Made by a program: the position numbers and the translations under genes. Positions 6,910 through 64,000 of a DNA stretch of 64,000 nucleotides are shown here, one piece after another. Origin of the DNA: Auanema rhodensis (Eukaryota; Animalia; Nematoda); assembly GCA_964057225.1 (NCBI GenBank), contig OZ059900.1, positions 14,756,001-14,820,000 on the forward strand, read 5' to 3'. Position 1 is the first letter of the stretch; every line of letters starts with the position of its first letter. The notes beneath the pieces were generated by a model. The model did not search any database, was not told the DNA's origin, and saw nothing but the letters and a program-made list of their open reading frames with translations.

Positions 6910-6951
6910 TTCCATTCGAATGATCAATGCATTACATTCATATGACGAAGC

Positions 6952-7193: not shown

Positions 7194-7382
7194 TCTGGAA
7201 TACTACCACGCTCATCTTGTAGACTCCATTGGTCTGTAAGATCGACGCGGGAGCATAACGGAACGAGAGTGTGAGTTTGAATTAAAGTAGAAAAATGAAA
7301 CACTGTCTCTAACTTATATTGATTTATGGCCTACTTTACTCAAAGAGATCACAGAATAACGATGAATCAGAACAAAAACATT

Positions 7383-7454
7383 CTCCCCGGCCGGGAATTG
7401 AACCCGAGTCTCGCATGTGACAGACGCGGATACTCACCACTATACTACCGAGGA
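7383..7454 (-). tRNA. tRNA-Asp(GTC), first copy; C49T variant (U-G wobble in T stem)
   Basis: 72-nt cloverleaf, anticodon loop CTGTCAC; plus strand aacccgagtc instead of aacccgggtc. Confidence 0.9.
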
Positions 7455-7813
7455 TTGAATTTGCACTTAGAAACTTTCATTAAGAGTGTGAGTTTGAATT
7501 AAAGTAGAGAAATGAAACACTTTCTCTAACATATCTTGATTTATGTCCTACTTTACTCAAAGAGCTAATTGAAGTTTGGTGTTACAATTAACGATTGATA
7601 AACGCTGACGTATCAATTTTTTTCATCGTAATTAAGATAGAACACTTAAATTAAATAGAAATGTTTGAAAATTAAAAAAAAAAAACACAAGCTCAAATCA
7701 CTTTTGAAAAAACAGAAAGTTTAAAACAACCTTTTTTCTAATAATTATCTTTTTTATCCGACTTTTGGAAAAAAACAAAAATAGCATAACATTCAATAAC
7801 GATGAATGAGAAC

Positions 7814-7818
7814 AAAAA
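7814..7818 (-). terminator. RNA Pol III T5 terminator (representative; repeated in nearly every unit)
   Basis: Minus strand reads G73-AATG-TTTTT, i.e. 4 nt after the discriminator. Confidence 0.85.
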
Positions 7819-7822
7819 CATT

Positions 7823-7894
7823 CTCCCCGGCCGGGAATTGAACCCGGGTCTCGCATGTGACAGACGCGGATACTCACCACTATACTACCGAGGA
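7823..7894 (-). tRNA. tRNA-Asp(GTC), canonical allele (representative)
   Basis: TCCTCGG TA GTAT AGTGGTGA GTAT C CGCGT CTGTCAC ATGCG AGAC CCGGG TTCAATT CCCGG CCGGGGA G. All stems pair, A box and B box are intact, G73 discriminator present. Confidence 0.97.
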
Positions 7895-8261
7895 TTGAAT
7901 TTGCACTTAGAAACTTTCATTGAGAGTGTGAGTTTGAATTAAAGTAGAAAAATGAAACACTGTCTCTAACATATCTTGATTTATGGCCTACTTTACTCAA
8001 AGAGCTAATTGAAGTTTGGTGTTACAATTAACGATTGATAAACGCTGACGTATCAATTTTTTTCATCGTAATTAAGATAGAACACTTAAATTTAATAGAA
8101 ATGTTTGAAAATTTAAAAACAAATCACAAGCTCAAACCACTTTTGAAAAAGCAGAAAGTTTAAAACAATCTTTTTTCTAATAATTATCTTTTTTATCCGA
8201 CTTTCGGAAGAAAACAAAAATAGCTTAACATTCAATAACGATGAATCAGAACAAAAACATT

Positions 8262-8333
8262 CTCCTTGGCCGGGAATTGAACCCGGGTCTCGCATGTGAC
8301 AGACGCGGATACTCACCACTATACTACCGAGGA
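8262..8333 (-). tRNA. tRNA-Asp(GTC), G68A/G69A allele (representative of ~26 copies)
   Basis: Plus strand ctccttggcc: U4-A69 becomes Watson-Crick while C5-A68 becomes a mismatch. Confidence 0.8.
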
Positions 8334-11300
8334 TTGAATTTGCACTTAGAAACTTTCATTAAGAGTGTGAGTTTGAATTAAAGTAGAAAAATGAAACACT
8401 TTCTCTAACATATCTTGATTTATGGCCTACTTTACTCAAAGAGCTCATTGAAGTTTGGTGTTAAAATGAACAATTGATTAACGCTGACGTTCCGTTTTTT
8501 TTTCATCGTAATTGAGATAGAACATTTAAATTAAATGGAAATGTTTAAAAATTTAGAAAAAAAACACAAGCTCAAATCACTTTTGAAAAAACAGAAAGTT
8601 TAAAACAACCTTTTTTCTAATAATTATCTTTTTTATCCGACTTTTGGAAAAAAACAAAAATAGCATAACATTCAATAACGATAAATCAGAACAAAAACAT
8701 TCTCCTTGGCCGGGAATTGAACCCGGGTCTCGCATGTGACAGACGCGGATACTCACCACTATACTACCGAGGATTGAATTTGCACATAAAAACTTTCATT
8801 AAGAGTGTGAGTTTGAATTAAAGTAGAAAAATGAAACACTGTCTCTAACATATCTTGATTTATGGCCTACTTTACTCAAAGAGCTAATTGAAGTTTGGTG
8901 TTACAATTAACGATTGATAAACGCTGACGTATCAATTTTTTTCATCGTAATTAAGATAGAACACTTAAATTTAATAGAAATGTTTGAAAATTTAAAAAAA
9001 AATCACAAGCTCAAACCACTTTTGAAAAAGCAGAAAGTTTAAAACAATCTTTTTTCTAATAATTATCGTCTTTATCCGACTTTTTGAAGAAAACAAAAAT
9101 AGCATAACATTCAATAACGATGAATCAGAACAAAAACATTCTCCTTGGCCGGGAATTGAACCCGGGTCTCGCATGTGACAGACGCGGATACTCACCACTA
9201 TACTACCGAGGATTGAATTTGCACTTAGAAACTTCCATTAAGAGTGTGAGTTTGAATTAAAGTAGAAAAATGAAACACTGTCTCTAACATATCTTGATTT
9301 ATGGCCTACTTTACTCAAAGAGCTAATTGAAGTTTGGTGTTAAAATGAACAATTGATTAACGCTGACGTTCCGTTTTTTTTTCATCGTAATTGAGATAGA
9401 ACATTTAAATTAAATGGAAATGTTTAAAAATTTAGAAAAAAAACACAAGCTCAAATCACTTTTGAAAAAACAGAAAGTTTAAAACAACCTTTTTTCTAAT
9501 AATTATCTTTTTTATCCGACTTTTGGAAAAAAACAAAAATAGCATAACATTCAATAACGATAAATCAGAACAAAAACATTCTCCCCGGCCGGGAATTGAA
9601 CCCGGGTCTCGCATGTGACAGACGCGGATACTCACCACTATACTACCGAGGATTGAATTTGCACTTAGAAACTTTCATTGAGAGTGTGAGTTTGAATTAA
9701 AGTAGAAAAATGAAACACTGTCTCTAACATATCTTGATTTATGGCCTACTTTACTCAAAGAGCTAATTGAAGTTTGGTGTTACAATTAACGATTGATAAA
9801 CGCTGACGTATCAATTTTTTTCATCGTAATTAAGATAGAACACTTAAATTTAATAGAAATGTTTGAAAATTTAAAAACAAATCACAAGCTCAAACCACTT
9901 TTGAAAAAGCAGAAAGTTTAAAACAATCTTTTTTCTAATAATTATCTTTTTTATCCGACTTTCGGAAGAAAACAAAAATAGCTTAACATTCAATAACGAT
10001 GAATCAGAACAAAAACATTCTCCTTGGCCGGGAATTGAACCCGGGTCTCGCATGTGACAGACGCGGATACTCACCACTATACTACCGAGGATTGAATTTG
10101 CACTTAGAAACTTTCATTAAGAGTGTGAGTTTGAATTAAAGTAGAAAAATGAAACACTTTCTCTAACATATCTTGATTTATGGCCTACTTTACTCAAAGA
10201 GCTCATTGAAGTTTGGTGTTAAAATGAACAATTGATTAACGCTGACGTTCCGTTTTTTTTTCATCGTAATTGAGATAGAACATTTAAATTAAATGGAAAT
10301 GTTTAAAAATTTAGAAAAAAAACACAAGCTCAAATCACTTTTGAAAAAACAGAAAGTTTAAAACAACCTTTTTTCTAATAATTATCTTTTTTATCCGACT
10401 TTTGGAAAAAAACAAAAATAGCATAACATTCAATAACGATAAATCAGAACAAAAACATTCTCCTTGGCCGGGAATTGAACCCGGGTCTCGCATGTGACAG
10501 ACGCGGATACTCACCACTATACTACCGAGGATTGAATTTGCACATAAAAACTTTCATTAAGAGTGTGAGTTTGAATTAAAGTAGAAAAATGAAACACTGT
10601 CTCTAACATATCTTGATTTATGGCCTACTTTACTCAAAGAGCTAATTGAAGTTTGGTGTTACAATTAACGATTGATAAACGCTGACGTATCAATTTTTTT
10701 CATCGTAATTAAGATAGAACACTTAAATTTAATAGAAATGTTTGAAAATTTAAAAAAAAATCACAAGCTCAAACCACTTTTGAAAAAGCAGAAAGTTTAA
10801 AACAATCTTTTTTCTAATAATTATCGTCTTTATCCGACTTTTTGAAGAAAACAAAAATAGCATAACATTCAATAACGATGAATCAGAACAAAAACATTCT
10901 CCTTGGCCGGGAATTGAACCCGGGTCTCGCATGTGACAGACGCGGATACTCACCACTATACTACCGAGGATTGAATTTGCACTTAGAAACTTCCATTAAG
11001 AGTGTGAGTTTGAATTAAAGTAGAAAAATGAAACACTGTCTCTAACATATCTTGATTTATGGCCTACTTTACTCAAAGAGCTAATTGAAGTTTGGTGTTA
11101 CAATTAACGATTGATAAACGCTGACGTATCAATTTTTTTCATCGTAATTAAGATAGAACACTTAAATTTAATAGAAATGTTTGAAAATTTAAAAAAAAAT
11201 CACAAGCTCAAACCACTTTTGAAAAAGCAGAAAGTTTAAAACAATCTTTTTTCTAATAATTATCTTTTTTATCCGACTTTCGGAAGAAAACAAAAATAGC

Positions 11301-14300
11301 TTAACATTCAATAACGATGAATCAGAACAAAAACATTCTCCTTGGCCGGGAATTGAACCCGGGTATCGCATGTGACAGACGCGGATACTCACCACTATAC
11401 TACCGAGGATTGAATTTGCACTTAGAAACTTTCATTAAGAGTGTGAGTTTGAATTAAAGTAGAAAAATGAAACACTTTCTCTAACATATCTTGATTTATG
11501 GCCTACTTTACTCAAAGAGCTCATTGAAGTTTGGTGTTAAAATGAACAATTGATTAACGCTGACGTTCCGTTTTTTTTTCATCGTAATTGAGATAGAACA
11601 TTTAAATTGAATGGAAATGTTTAAAAATTTAGAAAAAAAACACAAGCTCAAATCACTTTTGAAAAAACAGAAAGTTTAAAACAACCTTTTTTCTAATAAT
11701 TATCTTTTTTATCCGACTTTTGGAAAAAAACAAAAATAGCATAACATTCAATAACGATAAATCAGAACAAAAACATTCTCCCCGTCCGGGAATTGAACCC
11801 GGGTCTCGCATGTGACAGACGCGGATACTCACCACTATACTACCGAGGATTGAATTTGCACTTAGAAACTTCCATTAAGAGTGTGAGTTTGAATTAAAGT
11901 AGAAAAATGAAACACTGTCTCTAACATATCTTGATTTATGGCCTACTTTACTCAAAGAGCTAATTGAAGTTTGGTGTTACAATTAACGATTGATTAACGC
12001 TGACGTTCCGTTTTTTTTTCATCGTAATTGAGATAGAACATTTAAATTAAATGGAAATGTTTAAAAATTTAGAAAAAAAACACAAGCTCAAACCACTTTT
12101 GAAAAAGCAGAAAGTTTAAAACAATCTTTTTTCTAATAATGATCGTCTTTATCCGATTTTTGGAAAAAAACAAAAATAGCATAACATTCAATAACGATGA
12201 ATCAGAACAAAAACATTCTCCCCGGCCGGGAATTGAACCCGGGTCTCGCATGTGACAGACGCGGATACTCACCACTATACTACCGAGGATTGAATTTGCA
12301 CTTAGAAACTTTCATTAAGAGTGTGAGTTTGAATTAAAGTAGAAAAATCAAACACTTTCTCTAACATATCTTGATTTATGGCCTACTTTACTCAAAGAGC
12401 TAATTGAAGTTTGGTGTTAAAATGAACAATTGATTAACGCTGACGTTCCGTTTTTTTTTCATCGTAATTGAGATAGAACATTTAAATTAAATGGAAATGT
12501 TTAAAAATTTAGAAAAAAAACACAAGCTCAAATCACTTTTGAAAAAACAGAAAGTTTAAAACAACCTTTTTTCTAATAATTATCTTTTTTATCCGACTTT
12601 TGGAAAAAAACAAAAATAGCATAACATTCAATAACGATGAATGAGAACAAAAACATTCTCCCCGGCCGGGAATTGAACCCGGGTCTCGCATGTGACAGAC
12701 GCGGATACTCACCACTATACTACCGAGGATTGAATTTGCACTTAAAAACTTTCATTAAGAGTGTGAGTTTGAATTAAAGTAGAAAAATGAAACACTGTCT
12801 CTAACATATCTTGATTTATGGCCTACTTTACTCAAAGAGCTAATTGAAGTTTGGTGTTACAATTAACGATTGATAAACGCTGACGTATCAATTTTTTTCA
12901 TCGTAATTAAGATAGAACACTTAAATTTAATAGAAATGTTTGAAAATTTAAAAAAAAATCACAAGCTCAAACCACTTTTGAAAAAGCAGAAAGTTTAAAA
13001 CAATCTTTTTTCTAATAATTATCGTCTTTATCCGACTTTTTGAAGAAAACAAAAATAGCATAACATTCAATAACGATGAATCAGAACAAAAACATTCTCC
13101 TTGGCCGGGAATTGAACCCGGGTCTCGCATGTGACAGACGCGGATACTCACCACTATACTACCGAGGATTGAATTTGCACTTAGAAACTTTCATTAAGAG
13201 TGTGAGTTTGAATTAAAGTAGAAAAATGAAACACTTTCTCTAACATATCTTGATTTATGGCCTACTTTACTCAAAGAGCTAATTGAAGTTTGGTGTTACA
13301 ATTAACGATTGATAAACGCTGACGTATCAATTTTTTTCATCGTAATTGAGATAGAACATTTAAATTAAATGGAAATGTTTAAAAATTTTGAAAAAAAACA
13401 CAAGCTCAAATCACTTTTGAAAAAACAGAAAGTTTAAAACAACCTTTTTTCTAATAATTATCTTTTTTATCCGACTTTTGGAAAAAAACAAAAATAGCAT
13501 AACATTCAATAACGATAAATCAGAACAAAAACATTCTCCCCGTCCGGGAATTGAACCCGGGTCTCGCATGTGACAGACGCGGATACTCACCACTATACTA
13601 CCGAGGATTGAATTTGCACTTAGAAACTTCCATTAAGAGTGTGAGTTTGAATTAAAGTAGAAAAATGAAACACTGTCTCTAACATATCTTGATTTATGGC
13701 CTACTTTACTCAAAGAGCTAATTGAAGTTTGGTGTTACAATTAACGATTGATAAACGCTGACGTATCAATTTTTTTCATCGTAATTAAGATAGAACACTT
13801 AAATTTAATAGAAATGTTTGAAAATTTAAAAACAAATCACAAGCTCAAACCACTTTTGAAAAAGCAGAAAGTTTAAAACAATCTTTTTTCTAATAATTAT
13901 CTTTTTTATCCGACTTTCGGAAGAAAACAAAAATAGCTTAACATTCAATAACGATGAATCAGAACAAAAACATTCTCCTTGGCCGGGAATTGAACCCGGG
14001 TCTCGCATGTGACAGACGCGGATACTCACCACTATACTACCGAGGATTGAATTTGCACTTAGAAACTTTCATTAAGAGTGTGAGTTTGAATTAAAGTAGA
14101 AAAATGAAACACTTTCTCTAACATATCTTGATTTATGGCCTACTTTACTCAAAGAGCTAATTGAAGTTTGGTGTTACAATTAACGATTGATAAACGCTGA
14201 CGTATCAATTTTTTTCATCGTAATTAAGATAGAACACTTAAATTTAATAGAAATGTTTGAAAATTTAAAAAAAAATCACAAGCTCAAACCACTTTTGAAA

Positions 14301-17300
14301 AAGCAGAAAGTTTAAAACAATCTTTTTTCTAATAATTATCGTCTTTATCCGACTTTTTGAAGAAAACAAAAATAGCATAACATTCAATAACGATGAATCA
14401 GAACAAAAACATTCTCCTTGGCCGGGAATTGAACCCGGGTCTCGCATGTGACAGACGCGGATACTCACCACTATACTACCGAGGATTGAATTTGCACTTA
14501 GAAACTTTCATTAAGAGTGTGAGTTTGAATTAAAGTAGAAAAATGAAACACTTTCTCTAACATATCTTGATTTATGGCCTACTTTACTCAAAGAGCTAAT
14601 TGAAGTTTGGTGTTACAATTAACGATTGATAAACGCTGACGTATCAATTTTTTTCATCGTAATTGAGATAGAACATTTAAATTAAATGGAAATGTTTAAA
14701 AATTTTGAAAAAAAACACAAGCTCAAATCACTTTTGAAAAAACAGAAAGTTTAAAACAACCTTTTTTCTAATAATTATCTTTTTTATCCGACTTTTGGAA
14801 AAAAACAAAAATAGCATAACATTCAATAACGATAAATCAGAACAAAAACATTCTCCCCGTCCGGGAATTGAACCCGGGTCTCGCATGTGACAGACGCGGA
14901 TACTCACCACTATACTACCGAGGATTGAATTTGCACTTAGAAACTTCCATTAAGAGTGTGAGTTTGAATTAAAGTAGAAAAATGAAACACTGTCTCTAAC
15001 ATATCTTGATTTATGGCCTACTTTACTCAAAGAGCTAATTGAAGTTTGGTGTTACAATTAACGATTGATAAACGCTGACGTATCAATTTTTTTCATCGTA
15101 ATTAAGATAGAACACTTAAATTTAATAGAAATGTTTGAAAATTTAAAAACAAATCACAAGCTCAAACCACTTTTGAAAAAGCAGAAAGTTTAAAACAATC
15201 TTTTTTCTAATAATTATCTTTTTTATCCGACTTTCGGAAGAAAACAAAAATAGCTTAACATTCAATAACGATGAATCAGAACAAAAACATTCTCCTTGGC
15301 CGGGAATTGAACCCGGGTCTCGCATGTGACAGACGCGGATACTCACCACTATACTACCGAGGATTGAATTTGCACTTAGAAACTTTCATTAAGAGTGTGA
15401 GTTTGAATTAAAGTAGAAAAATGAAACACTTTCTCTAACATATCTTGATTTATGGCCTACTTTACTCAAAGAGCTCATTGAAGTTTGGTGTTAAAATGAA
15501 CAATTGATTAACGCTGACGTTCCGTTTTTTTTTCATCGTAATTGAGATAGAACATTTAAATTAAATGGAAATGTTTAAAAATTTAGAAAAAAAACACAAG
15601 CTCAAATCACTTTTGAAAAAACAGAAAGTTTAAAACAACCTTTTTTCTAATAATTATCTTTTTTATCCGACTTTTGGAAAAAAACAAAAATAGCATAACA
15701 TTCAATAACGATAAATCAGAACAAAAACATTCTCCTTGGCCGGGAATTGAACCCGGGTCTCGCATGTGACAGACGCGGATACTCACCACTATACTACCGA
15801 GGATTGAATTTGCACATAAAAACTTTCATTAAGAGTGTGAGTTTGAATTAAAGTAGAAAAATGAAACACTGTCTCTAACATATCTTGATTTATGGCCTAC
15901 TTTACTCAAAGAGCTAATTGAAGTTTGGTGTTACAATTAACGATTGATAAACGCTGACGTATCAATTTTTTTCATCGTAATTAAGATAGAACACTTAAAT
16001 TTAATAGAAATGTTTGAAAATTTAAAAAAAAATCACAAGCTCAAACCACTTTTGAAAAAGCAGAAAGTTTAAAACAATCTTTTTTCTAATAATTATCGTC
16101 TTTATCCGACTTTTTGAAGAAAACAAAAATAGCATAACATTCAATAACGATGAATCAGAACAAAAACATTCTCCTTGGCCGGGAATTGAACCCGGGTCTC
16201 GCATGTGACAGACGCGGATACTCACCACTATACTACCGAGGATTGAATTTGCACTTAGAAACTTCCATTAAGAGTGTGAGTTTGAATTAAAGTAGAAAAA
16301 TGAAACACTGTCTCTAACATATCTTGATTTATGGCCTACTTTACTCAAAGAGCTAATTGAAGTTTGGTGTTAAAATGAACAATTGATTAACGCTGACGTT
16401 CCGTTTTTTTTTCATCGTAATTGAGATAGAACATTTAAATTAAATGGAAATGTTTAAAAATTTAGAAAAAAAACACAAGCTCAAATCACTTTTGAAAAAA
16501 CAGAAAGTTTAAAACAACCTTTTTTCTAATAATTATCTTTTTTATCCGACTTTTGGAAAAAAACAAAAATAGCATAACATTCAATAACGATAAATCAGAA
16601 CAAAAACATTCTCCCCGGCCGGGAATTGAACCCGGGTCTCGCATGTGACAGACGCGGATACTCACCACTATACTACCGAGGATTGAATTTGCACTTAGAA
16701 ACTTTCATTGAGAGTGTGAGTTTGAATTAAAGTAGAAAAATGAAACACTGTCTCTAACATATCTTGATTTATGGCCTACTTTACTCAAAGAGCTAATTGA
16801 AGTTTGGTGTTACAATTAACGATTGATAAACGCTGACGTATCAATTTTTTTCATCGTAATTAAGATAGAACACTTAAATTTAATAGAAATGTTTGAAAAT
16901 TTAAAAACAAATCACAAGCTCAAACCACTTTTGAAAAAGCAGAAAGTTTAAAACAATCTTTTTTCTAATAATTATCTTTTTTATCCGACTTTCGGAAGAA
17001 AACAAAAATAGCTTAACATTCAATAACGATGAATCAGAACAAAAACATTCTCCTTGGCCGGGAATTGAACCCGGGTCTCGCATGTGACAGACGCGGATAC
17101 TCACCACTATACTACCGAGGATTGAATTTGCACTTAGAAACTTTCATTAAGAGTGTGAGTTTGAATTAAAGTAGAAAAATGAAACACTTTCTCTAACATA
17201 TCTTGATTTATGGCCTACTTTACTCAAAGAGCTCATTGAAGTTTGGTGTTAAAATGAACAATTGATTAACGCTGACGTTCCGTTTTTTTTTCATCGTAAT

Positions 17301-20300
17301 TGAGATAGAACATTTAAATTAAATGGAAATGTTTAAAAATTTAGAAAAAAAACACAAGCTCAAATCACTTTTGAAAAAACAGAAAGTTTAAAACAACCTT
17401 TTTTCTAATAATTATCTTTTTTATCCGACTTTTGGAAAAAAACAAAAATAGCATAACATTCAATAACGATAAATCAGAACAAAAACATTCTCCTTGGCCG
17501 GGAATTGAACCCGGGTCTCGCATGTGACAGACGCGGATACTCACCACTATACTACCGAGGATTGAATTTGCACATAAAAACTTTCATTAAGAGTGTGAGT
17601 TTGAATTAAAGTAGAAAAATGAAACACTGTCTCTAACATATCTTGATTTATGGCCTACTTTACTCAAAGAGCTAATTGAAGTTTGGTGTTACAATTAACG
17701 ATTGATAAACGCTGACGTATCAATTTTTTTCATCGTAATTAAGATAGAACACTTAAATTTAATAGAAATGTTTGAAAATTTAAAAAAAAATCACAAGCTC
17801 AAACCACTTTTGAAAAAGCAGAAAGTTTAAAACAATCTTTTTTCTAATAATTATCGTCTTTATCCGACTTTTTGAAGAAAACAAAAATAGCATAACATTC
17901 AATAACGATGAATCAGAACAAAAACATTCTCCTTGGCCGGGAATTGAACCCGGGTCTCGCATGTGACAGACGCGGATACTCACCACTATACTACCGAGGA
18001 TTGAATTTGCACTTAGAAACTTCCATTAAGAGTGTGAGTTTGAATTAAAGTAGAAAAATGAAACACTGTCTCTAACATATCTTGATTTATGGCCTACTTT
18101 ACTCAAAGAGCTAATTGAAGTTTGGTGTTACAATTAACGATTGATAAACGCTGACGTATCAATTTTTTTCATCGTAATTAAGATAGAACACTTAAATTTA
18201 ATAGAAATGTTTGAAAATTTAAAAAAAAATCACAAGCTCAAACCACTTTTGAAAAAGCAGAAAGTTTAAAACAATCTTTTTTCTAATAATTATCTTTTTT
18301 ATCCGACTTTCGGAAGAAAACAAAAATAGCTTAACATTCAATAACGATGAATCAGAACAAAAACATTCTCCTTGGCCGGGAATTGAACCCGGGTATCGCA
18401 TGTGACAGACGCGGATACTCACCACTATACTACCGAGGATTGAATTTGCACTTAGAAACTTTCATTAAGAGTGTGAGTTTGAATTAAAGTAGAAAAATGA
18501 AACACTTTCTCTAACATATCTTGATTTATGGCCTACTTTACTCAAAGAGCTCATTGAAGTTTGGTGTTAAAATGAACAATTGATTAACGCTGACGTTCCG
18601 TTTTTTTTTCATCGTAATTGAGATAGAACATTTAAATTGAATGGAAATGTTTAAAAATTTAGAAAAAAAACACAAGCTCAAATCACTTTTGAAAAAACAG
18701 AAAGTTTAAAACAACCTTTTTTCTAATAATTATCTTTTTTATCCGACTTTTGGAAAAAAACAAAAATAGCATAACATTCAATAACGATAAATCAGAACAA
18801 AAACATTCTCCCCGTCCGGGAATTGAACCCGGGTCTCGCATGTGACAGACGCGGATACTCACCACTATACTACCGAGGATTGAATTTGCACTTAGAAACT
18901 TCCATTAAGAGTGTGAGTTTGAATTAAAGTAGAAAAATGAAACACTGTCTCTAACATATCTTGATTTATGGCCTACTTTACTCAAAGAGCTAATTGAAGT
19001 TTGGTGTTACAATTAACGATTGATTAACGCTGACGTTCCGTTTTTTTTTCATCGTAATTGAGATAGAACATTTAAATTAAATGGAAATGTTTAAAAATTT
19101 AGAAAAAAAACACAAGCTCAAACCACTTTTGAAAAAGCAGAAAGTTTAAAACAATCTTTTTTCTAATAATGATCGTCTTTATCCGATTTTTGGAAAAAAA
19201 CAAAAATAGCATAACATTCAATAACGATGAATCAGAACAAAAACATTCTCCCCGGCCGGGAATTGAACCCGGGTCTCGCATGTGACAGACGCGGATACTC
19301 ACCACTATACTACCGAGGATTGAATTTGCACTTAGAAACTTTCATTAAGAGTGTGAGTTTGAATTAAAGTAGAAAAATCAAACACTTTCTCTAACATATC
19401 TTGATTTATGGCCTACTTTACTCAAAGAGCTAATTGAAGTTTGGTGTTAAAATGAACAATTGATTAACGCTGACGTTCCGTTTTTTTTTCATCGTAATTG
19501 AGATAGAACATTTAAATTAAATGGAAATGTTTAAAAATTTAGAAAAAAAACACAAGCTCAAATCACTTTTGAAAAAACAGAAAGTTTAAAACAACCTTTT
19601 TTCTAATAATTATCTTTTTTATCCGACTTTTGGAAAAAAACAAAAATAGCATAACATTCAATAACGATGAATGAGAACAAAAACATTCTCCCCGGCCGGG
19701 AATTGAACCCGGGTCTCGCATGTGACAGACGCGGATACTCACCACTATACTACCGAGGATTGAATTTGCACTTAAAAACTTTCATTAAGAGTGTGAGTTT
19801 GAATTAAAGTAGAAAAATGAAACACTGTCTCTAACATATCTTGATTTATGGCCTACTTTACTCAAAGAGCTAATTGAAGTTTGGTGTTACAATTAACGAT
19901 TGATAAACGCTGACGTATCAATTTTTTTCATCGTAATTAAGATAGAACACTTAAATTTAATAGAAATGTTTGAAAATTTAAAAAAAAATCACAAGCTCAA
20001 ACCACTTTTGAAAAAGCAGAAAGTTTAAAACAATCTTTTTTCTAATAATTATCGTCTTTATCCGACTTTTTGAAGAAAACAAAAATAGCATAACATTCAA
20101 TAACGATGAATCAGAACAAAAACATTCTCCTTGGCCGGGAATTGAACCCGGGTCTCGCATGTGACAGACGCGGATACTCACCACTATACTACCGAGGATT
20201 GAATTTGCACTTAGAAACTTTCATTAAGAGTGTGAGTTTGAATTAAAGTAGAAAAATGAAACACTTTCTCTAACATATCTTGATTTATGGCCTACTTTAC

Positions 20301-50050: not shown

Positions 50051-52946
50051 TTGAATTTGCACTTAGAAACTTTCATTAAGAGTGTGAGTTTGAAATATAG
50101 TAGAAAAATGAAACACTGTCTCTAACATATATTGATTTTTGGCCTACTTTACTCAAAGAGCTAATTGAAGTTTGGTGTTACAATTAACGATTGATTAACG
50201 CTGATGTTTCAATTTTTTTCATCGTAATTGAGATAGAACATTCAAATTAAATGGAAATGTTTAAAATTTAGTAAATATCACAAGCTCAAATTACTTTTGA
50301 AAAAACAGAAAGTTTAAAACAACCTTTTTTCTAATGATTATCTTTTTTATCCGACTTTCGGAAAAAAACAAAAATAGCATAACATTCAATAACGATGAAT
50401 CAGAACAAAAACATTCTCCCCGGCCGGGAATTGAACCCGGGTCTCGCATGTGACAGACGCAGATACTCACCACTATCCTACCGAGGATTGAATTTGCACT
50501 TAGAAACTTTCATTAAGAGTGTGAGTTTGAAATATAGTAGAAAAATGAAACACTGTCTCTAACATATATTGATTTTTGGCCTACTTTACTCAAAGAGCTA
50601 ATTGAAGTTTGGTGTTACAATTAACGATTGATTAACGCTGATGTTTCAATTTTTTTCATCGTAATTGAGATAGAACATTCAAATTAAATGGAAATGTTTA
50701 AAATTTAGTAAATATCACAAGCTCAAATTACTTTTGAAAAAACAGAAAGTTTAAAACAACCCTTTTTCTAATAATTATCTTTTTCATCCGACTTTTGGAA
50801 AAAAACAAAAATAGCATAACATTCAATAACGATGAATCAGAACAAAAACATTCTCCCCGGCCGGGAATTTAACCCGGGTCTCGCATGTGACAGACGCGGA
50901 TACTCACCACTATACTACCGAGGATTGAATTTGCACTTAGAAACTTTCATTAAAAGTGTGAGTTTGAATTAAAGTAGAAAAATGAAACACTGTCTCTAAC
51001 ATATCTTGATTTATGGCCTACTTTACTCAAAAAGCTAATTGAAGTTTGGTGTTAGAATGAACAATTGATTAACGCTGACGTTTCAATTTTTTTCATCGTA
51101 ATTAAGATAGAACACTTAAATTAAATAGAAATGTTTGAAAATTTAAAAAAAAATCACAAGCTCAAACCACTTTTGAAAAAGCAGAAAGTTTAAAACAATC
51201 TTTTTTCTAATAATTATCGTCTTTATCCGACTTTTTGAAGAAAACAAAAATAGCATAACATTAAATAACGATGAATCAGAACAAAGACATTCTCCCCGTC
51301 CGGGAATTGAACCCGGGTCTCGCATGTGACAGACGCAGATACTCACCACTATCCTACCGAGGATTGAATTTGCACTTAGAAACTTTCATTAAGAGTGTGA
51401 GTTTGAAATATAGTAGAAAAATGAAACACTGTCTCTAACATATATTGATTTTTGGCCTACTTTACTCAAAGAGCTAATTGAAGTTTGGTGTTACAATTAA
51501 CGATTGATTAACGCTGATGTTTCAATTTTTTTCATCGTAATTGAGATAGAACATTCAAATTAAATGGAAATGTTTAAAATTTAGTAAATATCACAAGCTC
51601 AAATTACTTTTGAAAAAACAGAAAGTTTAAAACAACCTTTTTTCTAATGATTATCTTTTTTATCCGACTTTCGGAAAAAAACAAAAATAGCATAACATTC
51701 AATAACGATGAATCAGAACAAAAACATTCTCCCCGGCCGGGAATTGAACCCGGGTCTCGCATGTGACAGACGCAGATACTCACCACTATCCTACCGAGGA
51801 TTGAATTTGCACTTAGAAACTTTCATTAAGAGTGTGAGTTTGAAATATAGTAGAAAAATGAAACACTGTCTCTAACATATATTGATTTTTGGCCTACTTT
51901 ACTCAAAGAGCTAATTGAAGTTTGGTGTTACAATTAACGATTGATTAACGCTGATGTTTCAATTTTTTTCATCGTAATTGAGATAGAACATTCAAATTAA
52001 ATGGAAATGTTTAAAATTTAGTAAATATCACAAGCTCAAATTACTTTTGAAAAAACAGAAAGTTTAAAACAACCCTTTTTCTAATAATTATCTTTTTCAT
52101 CCGACTTTTGGAAAAAAACAAAAATAGCATAACATTCAATAACGATGAATCAGAACAAAAACATTCTCCCCGGCCGGGAATTTAACCCGGGTCTCGCATG
52201 TGACAGACGCGGATACTCACCACTATACTACCGAGGATTGAATTTGCACTTAGAAACTTTCATTAAAAGTGTGAGTTTGAATTAAAGTAGAAAAATGAAA
52301 CACTGTCTCTAACATATCTTGATTTATGGCCTACTTTACTCAAAAAGCTAATTGAAGTTTGGTGTTAGAATGAACAATTGATTAACGCTGACGTTTCAAT
52401 TTTTTTCATCGTAATTAAGATAGAACACTTAAATTAAATAGAAATGTTTGAAAATTTAAAAAAAAATCACAAGCTCAAACCACTTTTGAAAAAGCAGAAA
52501 GTTTAAAACAATCTTTTTTCTAATAATTATCGTCTTTATCCGACTTTTTGAAGAAAACAAAAATAGCATAACATTAAATAACGATGAATCAGAACAAAGA
52601 CATTCTCCCCGTCCGGGAATTGAACCCGGGTCTCGCATGTGACAGACGCAGATACTCACCACTATCCTACCGAGGATTGAATTTGCACTTAGAAACTTTC
52701 ATTAAGAGTGTGAGTTTGAAATATAGTAGAAAAATGAAACACTGTCTCTAACATATATTGATTTTTGGCCTACTTTACTCAAAGAGCTAATTGAAGTTTA
52801 GAAAAAAAACACAAGCTCAAATCACTTTTGAAAAAACAGAAAGTTTAAAACAACCCTTTTTCTAATAATTATCTTTTTCATCCGACTTTTGGAAAAAAAC
52901 AAAAATAGCATAACATTAAATAACGATGAATCAGAACAAAAACATT

Positions 52947-53018
52947 CTCCCCGTCCGGGAATTGAACCCGGGTCTCGCATGTGATAGACGCGGATTCTCA
53001 CCACTATACTACCGTGGA
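52947..53018 (-). pseudogene. tRNA-Asp-derived copy with ATC anticodon on the T4A/T23A/C66A background
   Basis: Plus strand gtgatagacg (T at 52985) gives minus-strand loop CTATCAC. Confidence 0.75.
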
Positions 53019-57920: not shown

Positions 57921-58220
57921 TGTCGCTTCGGCGAAGGTATTCGGTTGTCGGTATTCCGCTGAGAATTAATAGAACAGATAGTCAGTGGTAGAATGCTTTA
58001 TTAAAGAGAAAGTTAACAATATCAACAAAATATAGATCGTCTATACTCCGTTGAAGTAAGTTGAGGTATATCGTATTTTCCGATCCCAAAGATGAAGATA
58101 TGGGAAGGCGGGCCGAAAAGTACAATCTGAAATAGACAAAGTAAAGCAAAACGATAAAAACAAAACTGAAATGGAACAAAACATAGAAAAAAGAATAAAA
58201 AATAATCGCTAACCGCGACA
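57921..58220. mobile_element. 300-bp solo LTR-like insertion with 5-bp target-site duplication GTCTC
   Basis: TGTCGC...GCGACA termini. GTCTC at 57916-57920 and 58221-58225, versus one copy in empty units. Unit spacing here is 744 = 439+305. AATAAA occurs on both strands (57997-58002 minus; 58194-58199 plus). Confidence 0.88.
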
Positions 58221-58520
58221 GTCTCTAACATATCTTGATTTATGGCCTACTTTACTCAAAGAGCTAATTGAAGTTTGGTGTTACAATTAACGATTGATTA
58301 ACGCTGACGTTTCAATTTTTTTCATCGTAATTAAGATAGAACACTTAAATAAAATAGAAATGTTTGAAAATTTGAAAAAAAATCACAAGCTCAAACCACT
58401 TTTGAAAAAGCAGAAAGTTTAAAACAATCTTTTTTCTAATAATTATCGTCTTTATCCGATTTTTTGAAGAAAACAAAAATAGCATAACATTCAATAACAA
58501 TGAATCCGAACAAAAACATT

Positions 58521-58592
58521 CTCCCCGGCCGGGAATTGAACCCGGGTCTCGCATGTGACAGACGCGGATACTCACCACTATACTACCGAGGA
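58521..58592 (-). tRNA. tRNA-Asp(GTC), canonical
   Basis: Canonical 72-mer. Confidence 0.93.
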
Positions 58593-61500
58593 TTGAATTT
58601 GCACTTAGAAACTTTCATTAAGAGTGTGAGTTTGAATTAAAGTAGAAAAATGAAACACTGTCTCTAACATATCTTGATTTATGGCCTACTTTACTCAAAG
58701 AGCTAATTGAAGTTTGGTATTACAATTAACGATTGATAAACGCTGACGTATCAATTTTTTTCATCGTAATTAAGATAGAACACTTAAATTAAATAGAAAT
58801 GTTTGAAAATTTAAAAAAAAATCACAAGCTCAAATCACTTTTGAAAAAGCAGAAAGTTTAAAACAATCTTTTTTCTAATAATTATCGTTTTTATCCGACT
58901 TTTTGAAGAAAACAAAAATAGCATAACATTCAATAACGATGAATCAGAACAAAAACATTCTCCCCGGCCGGGAATTGAACCCGGGTCTCGCATGTGACAG
59001 ACGCGGATACTCACCACTATACTACCGAGGATTGAATTTGCACTTAGAAACTTTCATTAAGAGTGTGAGTTTGAATTAAAGTAGAAAAATGAAACACTGT
59101 CTCTAACATATCTTGATTTATGGCCTACTTTACTCAAAGAGCTAATTGAAGTTTGGTGTTACAATTAACGATTGATTAACGCTGACGTTTCAATTTTTTT
59201 CATCGTAATTAAGATAGAACACTTAAATAAAATAGAAATGTTTGAAAATTTAAAAAAAAATCACAAGCTCAAACCACTTTTGAAAAAGCAGAAAGTTTAA
59301 AACAATCTTTTTTCTAATAATTATCGTCTTTATCCGATTTTTTGAAGAAAACAAAAATAGCATAACATTCAATAACGATGAATCCGAACAAAAACATTCT
59401 CCCCGGCCGGGAATTGAACCCGGGTCTCGCATGTGACAGACGCGGATTCTCACCACTATACTACCGAGGATTGAATTTGCACTTAGAAACTTTCATTAAG
59501 AGTGTGAGTTTGAATTAAAGTAGAAAAATGAAACACTGTCTCTAACATATCTTGATTTATGGCCTACTTTACTCAAAGAGCTAATTGAAGTTTGGTATTA
59601 CAATTAACGATTGATAAACGCTGACGTATCAATTTTTTTCATCGTAATTAAGATAGAACACTTAAATTAAATAGAAATGTTTGAAAATTTAAAAAAAAAT
59701 CACAAGCTCAAATCACTTTTGAAAAAGCAGAAAGTTTAAAACAATCTTTTTTCTAATAATTATCGTTTTTATCCGACTTTTTGAAGAAAACAAAAATAGC
59801 ATAACATTCAATAACGATGAATCAGAACAAAAACATTCTCCCCGGCCGGGAATTGAACCCGGGTCTCGCATGTGACAGACGCGGATACTCACCACTATAC
59901 TACCGAGGATTGAATTTGCACTTAGAAACTTTCATTAAGAGTGTGAGTTTGAATTAAAGTAGAAAAATGAAACACTGTCTCTAACATATCTTGATTTATG
60001 GCCTACTTTACTCAAAGAGCTAATTGAAGTTTGGTATTACAATTAACGATTGATAAACGCTGACGTATCAATTTTTTTCATCGTAATTAAGATAGAACAC
60101 TTAAATTAAATAGAAATGTTTGAAAATTTAAAAAAAAATCACAAGCTCAAATCACTTTTGAAAAAGCAGAAAGTTTAAAACAATCTTTTTTCTAATAATT
60201 ATCGTTTTTATCCGACTTTTTGAAGAAAACAAAAATAGCATAACATTCAATAACGATGAATCAGAACAAAAACATTCTCCCCGGCCGGGAATTGAACCCG
60301 GGTCTCGCATGTGACAGACGCGGATACTCACCACTATACTACCGAGGATTGAATTTGCACTTAGAAACTTTCATTAAGAGTGTGAGTTTGAATTAAAGTA
60401 GAAAAATGAAACACTGTCTCTAACATATCTTGATTTATGGCCTACTTTACTCAAAGAGCTAATTGAAGTTTGGTGTTACAATTAACGATTGATTAACGCT
60501 GACGTTTCAATTTTTTTCATCGTAATTAAGATAGAACACTTAAATAAAATAGAAATGTTTGAAAATTTAAAAAAAAATCACAAGCTCAAACCACTTTTGA
60601 AAAAGCAGAAAGTTTAAAACAATCTTTTTTCTAATAATTATCGTCTTTATCCGATTTTTTGAAGAAAACAAAAATAGCATAACATTCAATAACGATGAAT
60701 CAGAACAAAAACATTCTCCCCGGCCGGGAATTGAACCCGGGTCTCGCATGTGACAGACGCGGATACTCACCACTATACTACCGAGGATTGAATTTGCACT
60801 TAGAAACTTTCATTAAGAGTGTGAGTTTGAATTAAAGTAGAAAAATGAAACACTTTCTCTAACATATCTTGATTTATGGCCTACTTTACTCAAAGAGCTA
60901 ATTGAAGTTTGGTGTTAAAATGAACAATTGATTAACGCTGACGTTCCGTTTTTTTTTCATAGTAATTGAGATAGAACATTTAAATTAAATGGAAATGTTT
61001 AAAAATTTAGAAAAAAAACACAAGCTAAAATCACTTTTGAAAAAACAGAAAGTTTAAAACAACCTTTTTTCTAATAATTATCTTTTTTATCCGACTTTTG
61101 GAAAAAAACAAAAATAGCATAACATTCAATAACGATGAATCAGAACAAAAACATTCTCCCCGGCCGGGAATTGAACCCGGGTCTCGCATGTGACAGACGC
61201 GGATACTCACCACTATACTACCGAGGATTGAATTTGCACTTAGAAACTTTCATTAAGAGTGTGAGTTTGAATTAAAGTAGAAAAATGAAACACTGTCTCT
61301 AACATATCTTGATTTATGGCCTACTTTACTCAAAGAGCTAATTGAAGTTTGGTGTTACAATTAACGATTGATAAACGCTGACGTATCAATTTTTTTCATC
61401 GTAATTAAGATAGAACACTTAAATTAAATAGAAATGTTTGAAAATTTAAAAAAAATCACAAGCTCAAACCACTTTTGAAAAAGCAGAAAGTTTAAAACAA

Positions 61501-63788
61501 TCATTTTTCTAATAATTATCGTCTTTATCCGACTTTTTGAAGAAAACAAAAATAGCATAACATTCAATAACGATGAATCAGAACAAAAACATTCTCCCCG
61601 TCCGGGAATTGAACCCGGGTCTCGCATGTGACAGACGCGGATTCTCACCACTATACTACCGTGGATTGAATTCGCACTTAGAAACTTTCATTAAGAGTGT
61701 GAGTTTGAATTAAAGTAGAAAAATGAAACACTGTCTCTAACATATCTTGATTTATGGCCTACTTTACTCAAAGAGCTAATTGAAGTTTGGTGTTAGAATG
61801 AACAATTGATTAACGCTGACGTTTCAATTTTTTTCATCGTAATTGAGATAGAACATTTAGAATTAATGGAAATGTTTAACAATTTAGAAAAAAAACACAA
61901 GCTCAAATCACTTTTGAAAAAACAGAAAGTTTAAAACAACCCTTTTTCTAATAATTATCTTTTTCATCCGACTTTTGGAAAAAAACAAAAATAGCATAAC
62001 ATTAAATAACGATGAATCAGAACAAAAACATTCTCCCCGTCCGGGAATTGAACCCGGGTCTCGCATGTGACAGACGCGGATTCTCACCACTATACTACCG
62101 AGGATTGAATTTGCACTTAGAAACTTTCATTAAGAGTGTGAGTTTGAATTAAAGTAGAAAAATGAAACACTTTCTCTAACATATCTTGATTTATGGCCTA
62201 CTTTACTCAAAGAGCTAATTGAAGTTTGGTGTTAAAATGAACAATTGATTAACGCTGACGTTCCGTTTTTTTTTCATAGTAATTGAGATAGAACATTTAA
62301 ATTAAATGGAAATGTTTAAAAATTTAGAAAAAAAACACAAGCTAAAATCACTTTTGAAAAAACAGAAAGTTTAAAACAACCTTTTTTCTAATAATTATCT
62401 TTTTTATCCGACTTTTGGAAAAAAACAAAAATAGCATAACATTCAATAACGATGAACCAGAACAAAAACATTCTCCCCGGCCGGGAATTGAACCCGGGTC
62501 TCGCATGTGACAGACGCGGATACTCACCACTATACTACCGAGGATTGAATTTGCACTTAGAAACTTTCATTAAGAGTGTGAGTTTGAATTAAAGTAGAAA
62601 AATGAAACACTGTCTCTAACATATCTTGATTTATGGCCTACTTTACTCAAAGAGCTAATTGAAGTTTGGTGTTACAATTAACGATTGATTAACGCTGACG
62701 TTTCAATTTTTTTCATCGTAATTAAGATAGAACACTTAAATAAAATAGAAATGTTTGAAAATTTAAAAAAAAATCACAAGCTCAAACCACTTTTGAAAAA
62801 GCAGAAAGTTTAAAACAATCTTTTTTCTAATAATTATCGTCTTTATCCGATTTTTTGAAGAAAACAAAAATAGCATAACATTCAATAACGATGAATCAGA
62901 ACAAAAACATTCTCCCCGGCCGGGAATTGAACCCGGGTCTCGCATGTGACAGACGCGGATACTCACCACTATACTACCGAGGATTGAATTTGCACTTAGA
63001 AACTTTCATTAAGAGTGTGAGTTTGAATTAAAGTAGAAAAATGAAACACTTTCTCTAACATATCTTGATTTATGGCCTACTTTACTCAAAGAGCTAATTG
63101 AAGTTTGGTGTTAAAATGAACAATTGATTAACGCTGACGTTCCGTTTTTTTTTCATAGTAATTGAGATAGAACATTTAAATTAAATGGAAATGTTTAAAA
63201 ATTTAGAAAATATCACAAGCTAAAATCACTTTTGAAAAAACAGAAAGTTTAAAACAACCTTTTTTCTAATAATTATCTTTTTTATCCGACTTTTGGAAAA
63301 AAACAAAAATAGCATAACATTCAATAACGATGAATCAGAACAAAAACATTCTCCCCGGCCGGGAATTGAACCCGGGTCTCGCATGTGACAGACGCGGATA
63401 CTCACCACTATACTACCGAGGATTGAATTTGCACTTAGAAACTTTCATTAAGAGTGTGAGTTTGAATTAAAGTAGAAAAATGAAACACTGTCTCTAACAT
63501 ATCTTGATTTATGGCCTACTTTACTCAAAGAGCTAATTGAAGTTTGGTGTTACAATTAACGATTGATAAACGCTGACGTATCAATTTTTTTCATCGTAAT
63601 TAAGATAGAACACTTAAATTAAATAGAAATGTTTGAAAATTTAAAAAAAATCACAAGCTCAAACCACTTTTGAAAAAGCAGAAAGTTTAAAACAATCATT
63701 TTTCTAATAATTATCGTCTTTATCCGACTTTTTGAAGAAAACAAAAATAGCATAACATTCAATAACGATGAATCAGAACAAAAACATT

Positions 63789-63860
63789 CTCCCCGTCCGG
63801 GAATTGAACCCGGGTCTCGCATGTGACAGACGCGGATTCTCACCACTATACTACCGTGGA
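63789..63860 (-). pseudogene. Last tRNA-Asp copy in window (T4A/T23A/C66A allele)
   Basis: Plus strand ccccgtcc, ggattctc, accgtgga. Confidence 0.7.
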
Positions 63861-64000
63861 TTGAATTCGCACTTAGAAACTTTCATTAAGAGTGTGAGTT
63901 TGAATTAAAGTAGAAAAATGAAACACTGTCTCTAACATATCTTGATTTATGGCCTACTTTACTCAAAGAGCTAGTTGAAGTTTGGTGTTAGAATGAACAA

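Follow-up and report, generated by a model that had tools for sequence, protein, structure and literature searches.

Why should a single tRNA gene be repeated head to tail through most of a 64-kb stretch of a nematode chromosome, and is such an array a working gene set, a structural element, or DNA that is merely tolerated? The stretch in question, hereafter the window, comprises 64,000 nucleotides of contig C8 of Auanema rhodense. Within it, ARAGORN identifies 129 tRNA-Asp genes between 7383 and 63860, every one of them on the minus strand; the anticodon is GTC (GUC) in 128 of these and ATC (AUC) in one, located at 52947-53018. The features of the window are as follows.

1 to 7265, plus strand: 3' 7.3 kb of an 11,614-bp Gypsy-type LTR retrotransposon (whole element at C8 14,751,652-14,763,265), with an env-like/protease ORF at 457-3069, an RT-RNaseH-integrase ORF at 3280-6216 and the 3' LTR at 6908-7265
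7266 to 64000, minus strand: head-to-tail array of a 439-bp unit, holding the 129 tRNA-Asp genes, each 72 nt with a 367-nt spacer
7266 to 7382, minus strand: truncated first unit adjoining the retrotransposon, with 7 bp in place of unit positions 101-329
7823 to 8261, minus strand: reference unit, with the majority tRNA-Asp(GUC) allele at 7823-7894, A box TAGTATAGTGG, B box GGTTCAATTCC and a T5 terminator from 4 nt after the 3' end
8262 to 21957, minus strand: sector richest in the "AA" acceptor-stem allele, made of repeated multi-unit blocks
52605 to 53018, minus strand: unit shortened to 342 bp by a deletion within its spacer, beside the sole ATC-anticodon copy
57922 to 58221, minus strand: solo LTR of 300 bp, inserted 68-72 bp upstream of the following tRNA, with unit positions 367-371 duplicated as its 5-bp target site

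The array has a period of 439 bp, with matches of ~95% (TRF), and the spacings between tRNA-Asp genes are distributed accordingly: 439 bp in 78 cases, 440 bp in 30, 438 bp in 12 and 437 bp in six. Two spacings are odd, one of 342 bp resulting from the unit with an internal deletion and one of 744 bp resulting from the presence of the solo LTR. The family to which this solo LTR belongs recurs in two sampled loci (L009 and L012), at unit positions 377-382. When scored against the Rfam tRNA model, the units reach 47.8-55.4 bits (gathering score 29). Among the 126 full-length units, the A box is unaltered in 117 and the B box in 120, while a run of five or more T residues is present in 123 and begins 4 nt past the gene in 122. 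No second RNA was found in the spacer by a permissive Rfam scan. The locus therefore displays both features of a tandem tRNA gene array, namely head-to-tail copies of one unit and, within them, a recognisable gene, promoter boxes and a Pol III terminator. In this respect ARAGORN, TRF, Rfam and the box counts all agree with a preliminary description of this DNA, which had reported 129 tRNA-Asp units in the same orientation, with boxes and terminators, at a period of ~439 bp. That description also considered the array open-ended from 7265. The array does run past 64000, but position 7265 is the end of the retrotransposon, and the array resumes beyond the element.

How far, then, does the array extend? 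A spacer probe has 1,524 matches genome-wide (among the matches listed, all on C8), corresponding to a domain of ~1,524 units that spans roughly 14.24–15.10 Mb of C8, or ~0.86 Mb, and of which the window represents about 8.5%. Consistent with this extent, the sampled loci from 14.30 to 15.10 Mb carry the array. Orientation switches occur in it; at one sampled locus (L001), the possibility that a mirror-image junction arose by recent fold-back duplication was ruled out, the mirrored arms being 96.8% alike, no more so than random pairs of units. A 30-nt core probe detects 1,633 tRNA-Asp cores genome-wide, and the tRNA-Asp genes outside the domain include single copies on contigs C3 and C6 plus a 727-bp array on C3. 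Array DNA on C3, at 15.86-16.6 Mb, combines tRNA-Asp with U1. The dispersed copies and the domain have exactly the same 30-nt core and 3' 25-mer, and the wild-type 3' 25-mer is kept in about 80% of copies genome-wide. The numbers of repeat units and of cores both lie far above ordinary need, bearing out the earlier suggestion that the copy number exceeds what translation requires.

The chromosomal setting of the domain bears directly on what the array may be. Three published X-repeat FISH probes of Auanema rhodense match the assembly exactly at 5,045, 31,326 and 11,199 sites; among the matches listed, those of XR-1, XT-2 and XT-1 are all on C8, and reversed controls gave 0 matches. Judged by these exact probe matches, the genome is that of Auanema rhodense and C8 is its X chromosome. 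Exact cores of the break motif occur on C8 at 5.50 Mb (a pair), at 9.641 and 9.645 Mb and at 10.707 Mb, and a cluster of six identical cores, 3,495 bp apart, lies at 14,217,207-14,234,682. No core was found on C8 to the right of 14,234,682 by an exact-core search, which is not fully sensitive; the same search found none on contig C2, an illustration of its limited sensitivity, and a break site to the right of the array that escaped it is conceivable. A recent preprint describes four break sites on the X as well as five identical motifs in 14 kb, at a 3.5-kb spacing, within eliminated DNA, and the X layout that it gives agrees with the C8 map obtained here (bioRxiv 10.64898/2026.08.27.747507). 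The right-arm break site of the X is probably at 14,217,207, the first of the six motifs. The tRNA-Asp domain begins just past this cluster (14.217-14.235 Mb), and the XT-2 satellite, which is lost from somatic nuclei by FISH (bioRxiv 10.64898/2026.08.27.747507), directly borders tRNA-Asp blocks and alternates with them at 15.016-15.044 Mb and again from 15.101 Mb onward. The position of the domain past the break sites and its interleaving with an eliminated satellite, together with the observations of the preprint, make it very probable that the domain is restricted to the germline and discarded from body cells. The same preprint gives a coverage of 29-fold for the X end blocks versus 146-fold for X gene regions. 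The cut itself is set by a palindromic motif ~20 kb before the first unit and not by the tRNA genes. The idea, also raised in the preliminary description, that the array is a programmed-elimination substrate consequently holds in a passive sense, in that the array lies within DNA that is very probably discarded, but not in the sense that the tRNA genes specify the cut.

Two other placements of the cut were considered and rejected. Firstly, a last X break site at 10,706,800 would put all listed chromosomal exact 18S rDNA 3' ends in discarded DNA, and the X layout in the preprint (bioRxiv 10.64898/2026.08.27.747507) fits the first motif at 14.217 Mb instead. Secondly, a cut at the last of the six motifs with the array side kept was judged unlikely; it would require extra break sites at each tRNA-Asp/XT-2 junction and a somatic chromosome lacking any gene-rich region. 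The ORF content of samples from 13.7-14.1 Mb was of no help in choosing the retained side.

Does selection nonetheless maintain the individual genes? The tRNA accounts for 18 of 126 distinct substitutions in the window and 41 of 246 in a set of 336 units, against an expected share of 16.4% (p = 0.63 and 0.93), and singletons are not depleted in the tRNA-Asp gene. When base class is controlled, the odds of substitution in tRNA versus spacer are ~0.6, a value that is not significant (p = 0.25-0.42) and that would still be compatible with mild constraint. Among distinct stem variants, 20 of 28 break a pair, roughly the frequency that random mutation would produce; at least one broken stem pair is present in 63 of the 126 full-length units of the window, and at least two in 28. 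Since free-energy folding misses the cloverleaf of even the intact allele, fold damage was judged only by the energy of an imposed cloverleaf and by counts of broken pairs. The 130 bp 5' of the gene are more uniform than the gene itself. Neither signature of purifying selection, fewer mutations in the gene than in the spacer or a bias against stem breaks, was observed.

Damaged alleles are moreover copied along with their neighbors. In the window they reach 26 and ~18 copies, amplified as multi-unit blocks, and one block, ABBBJEAABE, is found twice in the sector at 8262-21957. The "AA" allele, G68A/G69A, produces a C5-A68 mismatch in the acceptor stem and is present 42 times genome-wide, exclusively at 14.367-14.853 Mb of C8. 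The block-wise copying of units with broken stem pairs upholds the earlier claim that defective alleles amplify and, together with the equal density of mutations in gene and spacer, fits a relaxation of constraint on the tRNA-Asp genes in this sector. Broken genes are commoner in more diverged blocks (Spearman rho 0.62, p = 0.025). In each block sampled, copies with the intact allele form the majority, and nearly all copies are intact in those at 14.30 and 14.94-15.10 Mb.

Taken together, these data suggest, with a probability that we put at roughly 0.7, that the array in the window is an old, decaying sector of a one-gene tRNA-Asp(GUC) satellite in the eliminated right-hand block of the X, under negligible per-copy selection. 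According to this explanation, the satellite would consist of ~1,500 copies, over ~0.86 Mb, of a single tRNA-Asp(GUC) gene and its flank, situated at the start of a block that would be cut off and lost from all body cells early in embryogenesis. The unit would have been amplified by unequal crossing-over and segmental duplication. Because there are so many copies, because these would be absent from the soma, and because other tRNA-Asp genes exist elsewhere, selection on any one copy would be negligible, such that blocks would be born intact and then decay with age. In germ cells, Pol III factors probably still assemble on the genes of the array, and there is no need for a structural or elimination-directing role to explain the array.

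A hint that Pol III factors occupy the array genes in the germline is provided by the retroelements that interrupt them. The Gypsy-type element has LTRs of 358 bp that are 99.4% identical; it was inserted 28 bp upstream of a tRNA, and its 4-bp target duplication leaves unit positions 408-411 on either side. In total, five of six retroelement interruptions lie between unit positions 367 and 411, or 28-72 bp upstream of a tRNA, and derive from at least three LTR families; the sixth breaks within a tRNA. The chance of such upstream clustering is, as a rough figure, ~6e-4. Since four of the upstream interruptions lie within one 16-bp stretch, local sequence preference may also account for the clustering. 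The five events form what is expected of a Pol III-directed target zone, independent insertions clustered a short distance upstream of a tRNA, and their distances match the range of Pol III-directed integration by yeast Ty1/Ty3 and Dictyostelium TRE5-A and DGLT-A (PMC5006619, PMC6101501, PMC7459421), although, compared with those elements, the array offers five or six events known from sequence alone. No report of tRNA-upstream retroelement targeting in nematodes was found in a limited literature search. The clustering points to an ability of nematode LTR elements to target Pol III genes.

A different reading considers the array a working gene set, of germline or oocyte type, that supplies extra tRNA-Asp during oogenesis and the first cleavages before being removed, physically, rather than silenced, with selection at the level of the array keeping most copies intact. 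Array-level selection for a working pool would likewise give the observed majority of intact alleles in all sampled blocks, including the nearly intact blocks at either end of the sampled range, and the wild-type 3' 25-mer seen in about 80% of copies. Also in keeping with a supply function are the retention of A and B boxes and terminators in more than 90% of units, the sequence identity shared with the dispersed copies, the location of retroelement insertions where Pol III-directed integration would put them, and the presence of 5S, U2 and several tRNA arrays in eliminated DNA (bioRxiv 10.64898/2026.08.27.747507). However, mutations are not depleted in the gene, stem breaks arise at an approximately random rate, and damaged alleles have been amplified in blocks; in addition, eliminated DNA is enriched in H3K27me3, and the preprint favors neutral accumulation (bioRxiv 10.64898/2026.08.27.747507). 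On balance, we regard a germline supply function as possible but unlikely. An extension of the idea, which we offer only tentatively and also hold to be doubtful, is that the discarded chromosome arms carry working, germline-only arrays of tRNA, 5S and U2 genes, which would increase RNA output during oogenesis and the first cleavages and be physically lost at the 12-cell stage; with Pol III factors bound to them in germ cells, these arrays would also constitute a landing zone for tRNA-targeting retroelements at no cost to the soma. In the Xenopus and zebrafish systems, the extra genes stay in somatic DNA in a silenced state, and experiments have demonstrated that oocytes use them. Unlike these, the tRNA-Asp array would be physically removed, and its expression is hypothetical. 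The resemblance lies in the existence of very large tandem Pol III families that are linked to the germline or early embryo and set apart from a smaller somatic set, as in the oocyte 5S and tandem tDNA clusters of Xenopus and the chromosome 4 block of zebrafish (PMC11075544).

The array could instead have a structural role, as a chromatin boundary, a condensin/TFIIIC loading zone, or a chromosome-specific element for pairing or segregation of the X, which behaves unusually in Auanema, in which case its position by the break site would be functional. tRNA genes have boundary and condensin-loading roles in yeast and mammals. The domain does start directly after the break-site cluster and its unit is X-specific (among the spacer-probe matches listed, all are on C8), and the preprint raises the speculation that repeats confined to the X affect its segregation (bioRxiv 10.64898/2026.08.27.747507). 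Nothing in the sequence calls for such a role, however; other break sites of the genome adjoin ordinary satellites rather than tRNA arrays (C8 map and bioRxiv 10.64898/2026.08.27.747507), the array is full of inversions, transposons and decayed units, and the 12-Mb XT-2 block could fill any bulk role as well. A structural role thus appears improbable. Of the functions that the preliminary description had raised, the sequence yielded no evidence for one resembling a centromere or telomere, for condensin loading, for a boundary or for a source of tRNA fragments. That the assembler inflated the copy number or misplaced the array is scarcely credible: long tandem repeats do assemble poorly, and 11 Mb of the assembly is unplaced, but the units show structured, non-random variants and form multi-unit blocks, the transposon insertions are unique and flanked by target duplications, the array switches orientation, and HiFi reads map uniquely in the repeat blocks (bioRxiv 10.64898/2026.08.27.747507).

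Germline-restricted tRNA arrays of Auanema rhodense are already known in outline from the August 2026 preprint cited above (bioRxiv 10.64898/2026.08.27.747507), which annotates 19,554 tRNA loci, 215 of them called pseudogenes, and identifies some of the tandem repeats confined to the germline as arrays of 5S rRNA, of "several" tRNA loci and of U2 snRNA. Those arrays come from the same species and, by the mapping presented here, the same DNA, and the reported tRNA density of <20% per 10 kb is consistent with the 72/439 = 16.4% of the present unit. The accessible portion of the preprint text contains no per-array description and no analysis of constraint, allele structure or transposon insertion sites, and its count of 215 pseudogene loci may be set against the 63 units with a broken stem pair in the window alone. 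The tRNA arrays of Entamoeba, for which a structural role has been proposed, are likewise long, head-to-tail and a sizeable share of the genome (PMC2652664). Their units, however, contain up to five tRNA genes with microsatellite-like spacers, whereas one isoacceptor fills the array described here, and almost all Entamoeba tRNA genes reside in arrays (PMC2652664), whereas Auanema rhodense has dispersed copies too and very probably discards the array from its body cells.

If merely tolerated, the tRNA-Asp array is a clean natural example of an essential gene that, once copied into DNA invisible to the body, multiplies, decays and gathers transposons, and it supports the view, found in the preprint, of eliminated DNA as a zone of weak selection (bioRxiv 10.64898/2026.08.27.747507). 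Alleles found only in the array, such as the 42-copy AA acceptor variant, the A4/A23/A66 allele and C56A, are ready barcodes with which the question of transcription can be addressed by tRNA sequencing. Should germ cells prove to transcribe the array, programmed DNA elimination would at the same time act to switch the dosage of the translation machinery, and a germline-only RNA gene set, if real, would be the DNA-level counterpart of the switch between oocyte and somatic 5S genes in frogs.

Within the 64-kb window, which spans C8 14,756,001-14,820,000 of a 180.9-Mb assembly, ARAGORN identified 129 tRNA-Asp genes between 7383 and 63860, every one on the minus strand (anticodon GTC in 128 and ATC in one), and Tandem Repeats Finder recovered a period of 439 bp at approximately 95% matches, bearing out the copy number, period of about 439 bp, and shared orientation that had been read from the sequence. 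The genes belong to the eukaryote-type tRNA-Asp class and score 47.8 to 55.4 bits against the Rfam tRNA model, for which the gathering score is 29. The promoter boxes and terminators noted in the preliminary description were likewise recovered: among 126 full-length units, the A box (TAGTATAGTGG) is unaltered in 117, the B box (GGTTCAATTCC) in 120, and the T5 run beginning 4 nt past the tRNA 3' end in 122. The array, previously delimited to 7265-64000 and considered open-ended, does run past the right edge and goes on, with interruptions, to ~15.10 Mb of contig C8, but position 7265 is the end of an inserted retrotransposon, beyond which the array resumes, turning to the plus strand only farther left.

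A 30-nt spacer probe matched the assembly 1,524 times (416 forward, 1,108 reverse), with all exact matches, among those listed, on C8; the window accounts for approximately 8.5% of the roughly 1,500 units in this X-specific domain, within which orientation switches at least twice. A 30-nt core of the tRNA gave 1,633 matches genome-wide, and those beyond the spacer-probe set comprise a second tRNA-Asp array (C3 15.86-16.64 Mb), built of a 727-bp unit without the X spacer probe, together with a few isolated copies on C3 and C6.

C8 is identified as the X chromosome because published X-repeat FISH probes, whose sequences are printed in a preprint (bioRxiv 10.64898/2026.08.27.747507), match the genome exactly, with the listed sites on C8: XR-1 has 5,045 exact matches, from C8 7.209 Mb, XT-1 has 11,199, from 0.075 Mb, and XT-2 has 31,326, among them sites at 15.016-15.044 Mb, from 15.101 Mb onward, and at 18.0 Mb. 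Reversed-sequence controls of the three probes have zero matches in the genome, which is therefore that of A. rhodense or one all but identical to it. According to the preprint, ~61% of the germline genome is removed from somatic cells by cutting at a palindromic motif of 29 bases. For the X it gives four break sites and, within 14 kb of eliminated DNA, five identical motifs of high score at 3.5-kb intervals, and its FISH shows XT-2 to be lost from somatic nuclei (bioRxiv 10.64898/2026.08.27.747507). It also describes big repeat blocks at both ends of the X and two smaller ones mid-chromosome, with three central high-coverage non-repetitive regions between them, a layout with which the sampled C8 map agrees. 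The break-motif core, AGGCT-N-AGCCT, occurs at 45 sites genome-wide vs 23 for a control.

Sampled map of C8 and its break-motif cores
0-5.50 Mb: XT-1 satellite
5.50-7.21 Mb: unique DNA
7.21 to ~9 Mb: XR-1 satellite
~9 to 10.71 Mb: unique DNA
10.71-13.6 Mb: satellites and rDNA
13.7-14.2 Mb: unique DNA
Beyond 14.217 Mb: right-hand repeat block
5,500,719 and 5,501,286: motif cores
6,461,053: motif core
9,641,215 and 9,644,885: motif cores
10,706,800: motif core
14,217,207-14,234,682: six motif cores, spaced exactly 3,495 bp, shortly ahead of the first tRNA-Asp unit

The six clustered motifs are identical over 25 nt, an exact-core search found none on C8 to the right of 14,234,682, and the preprint's five motifs spanning 14 kb correspond to 4 x 3,495 = 13,980 bp. 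Since six identical motifs are present and five were counted as eliminated, the sixth would be the true break, and the leftmost was chosen because it alone suits a layout that keeps the left-side unique DNA. The first motif (14,217,207) is thus probably the true X right-arm break, the other five being back-ups in discarded DNA. The tRNA-Asp domain begins directly beyond this cluster and both adjoins and alternates with the XT-2 satellite, and from its position the array is very likely germline-restricted.

A candidate last break site at 10,706,800 was rejected because 18S 3' ends would then fall in discarded DNA, leaving the soma without rDNA, and because the preprint's layout disagrees. Among the matches listed on the assembled chromosomes, exact 18S rRNA 3' ends lie on C8, either left of 5.5 Mb or right of 10.98 Mb, the one exception being a copy near an end of C4 (575,095). 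The main 18S-5.8S-28S rDNA array, of 6,567-bp units in both orientations, occupies C8 10.98-12.6 Mb (sampled loci L018-L025), between two retained unique regions of the X, and a further eight units, repeating every 8.4 kb, are found at the far left end of the X (C8 3,030-66,133), in DNA expected to be discarded. A break-site-like palindrome does occur at C8 10,706,791-10,706,819 (L015 4791-4819), at the exact junction of unique DNA with a 244/157-bp satellite. The preprint mentions four high-scoring motifs that lie unused in retained DNA (bioRxiv 10.64898/2026.08.27.747507), and this palindrome is more likely to be one of them.

The majority allele is found in only 52 of the 129 window copies, and the remainder include several recurrent damaged forms.

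Main variant tRNA-Asp alleles in the window
G68A/G69A (AA): 26 copies, C5-A68 mismatch
U23A + C66A family: about two dozen copies, D-stem and acceptor-stem pairs broken; most members also carry U4A (triple mutant, 14 copies)
C56A: 6 copies, invariant T-loop and B-box base altered
Anticodon mutant ATC: 1 copy

At least one non-standard stem pair is present in 63 of 126 full-length units and at least two in 28, and the energy of the imposed cloverleaf, -22.8 kcal/mol for the intact allele, is -12.8 to -17.7 kcal/mol in multiple mutants. Gene finders overstate gene intactness in this sector. Decay within the domain is greatest in the window sector and the next 70 kb; in blocks sampled at 14.30 Mb and 14.94-15.10 Mb nearly all genes are intact. 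The wild-type tRNA 3' 25-mer occurs 1,333 times genome-wide and its AA counterpart 42 times, in every case within C8 14.367-14.853 Mb. If each unit of the window is coded by its tRNA allele, multi-unit blocks recur (ABBBJEAABE twice, DIM-DIM-DI, and CHAF-HAF), which shows segmental duplication to be spreading damaged alleles, as the preliminary description had anticipated of defective copies.

Selection on the tRNA was assessed by four constraint tests on 336 aligned units. Within the window, the tRNA has a nucleotide diversity of 0.031 and the spacer a higher one of 0.048, mostly because old subfamily differences sit in the mid-spacer. The tRNA share of distinct substitutions, 18/126 in the window and 41/246 in the 336 units, compares with 16.4% expected by length (p = 0.63 and 0.93, respectively), and no depletion of singletons in the tRNA relative to the spacer was found in the aligned units. 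With GC content at 60% in the tRNA and 25% in the spacer, comparison was made within base class, giving odds of a variable site in the tRNA of ~0.6 at GC and AT sites alike, without statistical significance (p = 0.25-0.42). Distinct stem variants break the pair in 20 of 28 cases, roughly the level of random mutation, and the spacer divergence of a block correlates positively with its broken genes (Spearman rho 0.62, p = 0.025). These results exclude strong constraint on individual copies; weak constraint may exist.

Six interruptions were observed in ~200 kb of sampled array. Five are independent LTR-element insertions, in which at least three families are represented; they occupy unit positions 367-371, 373-375, 377-382, 378, and 408-411, or 28-72 bp upstream of the tRNA start; the sixth, of which one end was sampled, breaks the tRNA at position 21 beside another LTR-type element.

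Insertion places and elements
Window 1-7265: 11,614-bp retrotransposon, right-hand part
Window 457-3069, plus strand: upstream ORF of this retrotransposon
Window 57922-58221: insertion
L001 8498-9536 (C8 14,744,498-14,745,536): 1,039-bp piece that contains an ORF and is bounded by perfect 26-bp terminal inverted repeats
L007 3433-3589 and 9725-9881: two occurrences of a 157-bp fragment of the L001 element
L009 5550-5848: insertion
L012 342-640: insertion
L005 3087-10000 (C8 14,883,087-14,890,000): element at the sixth interruption, 979-aa ORF with gag domain

The retrotransposon ending at window 7265 is a complete Gypsy-type LTR element inserted in the array, with 358-bp LTRs 99.4% identical and a 4-bp target duplication; judged by its LTRs, it is young. 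Its upstream ORF encodes an aspartyl protease together with a viral fusion-glycoprotein domain (Pfam Monjiviricetes_fusion; herpes gB matches more weakly), and an RT-RNaseH-integrase ORF follows. The element looks enveloped and retrovirus-like. At C8 14.7445 Mb, the L001 piece forms the core of a mirror-image junction, an orientation switch at which both arms end at unit position 378. A recent fold-back duplication was rejected here since the mirrored arms resemble each other no more than random unit pairs.

Five of the six events fall within a single 45-bp stretch of the 439-bp unit, for which the rough chance is ~6e-4. In yeast and Dictyostelium, retroelements tethered to the Pol III machinery leave such a pattern (PMC5006619, PMC6101501, PMC7459421), and the A. 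rhodense insertions, similarly clustered just upstream of the tRNA, look like Pol III-directed integration. Because heritable insertions arise in germ cells, the clustering hints that array genes may be occupied there by Pol III factors. Local sequence preference is an alternative, since four events lie inside one 16-bp stretch. A limited literature search found no report of nematode LTR elements directed to Pol III genes.

The 130 bp upstream of the tRNA (unit positions 311-439, e.g., window 7895-8023, minus strand) have a diversity of 0.018, vs 0.031 in the tRNA and 0.073 in the mid-spacer. Within the insertion hot zone, at -66 to -59, lies GTGTTTCA, which may resemble the Ruby motif found upstream of C. 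elegans piRNAs, CTGTTTCA.

Together these data favor, with a probability of about 0.72, a satellite of an arm discarded from the soma, amplified from a single tRNA-Asp gene and under relaxed selection. One gene and its flank would have been amplified by unequal exchange in an arm never kept by body cells, where individual copies would be dispensable given ~1,500 copies and tRNA-Asp genes elsewhere; young blocks would be intact, and old blocks such as the window would decay, invert, and gather transposons. The main rival, that the array is maintained as a working germline or oocyte supply and then removed, appears unlikely: the intact allele is the majority one, promoter and terminator are conserved, and the insertion pattern would suit such a role, but the mutation tests do not fit and damaged alleles have been amplified. 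A structural role, raised at the outset, is very improbable, for although the domain is X-specific and adjoins a break site, its sequence contains no feature demanding one.

The array is real, and its outline was already known, as the preprint counts 19,554 tRNA loci, only 215 of them pseudogenes, and includes arrays of 'several' tRNA loci among the germline-restricted repeats (bioRxiv 10.64898/2026.08.27.747507). To this, the present analysis adds a count of 1,524 units, an X map with the right-arm break at 14,217,207 and a probably unused motif at 10.707 Mb, the overstatement of intactness by gene finders in the window sector, a test showing the tRNA gene to be without strong constraint, and array-only barcode alleles together with an insertion hot zone. 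The number of tRNA-Asp genes left to the soma depends on whether the C3 array is kept or discarded.
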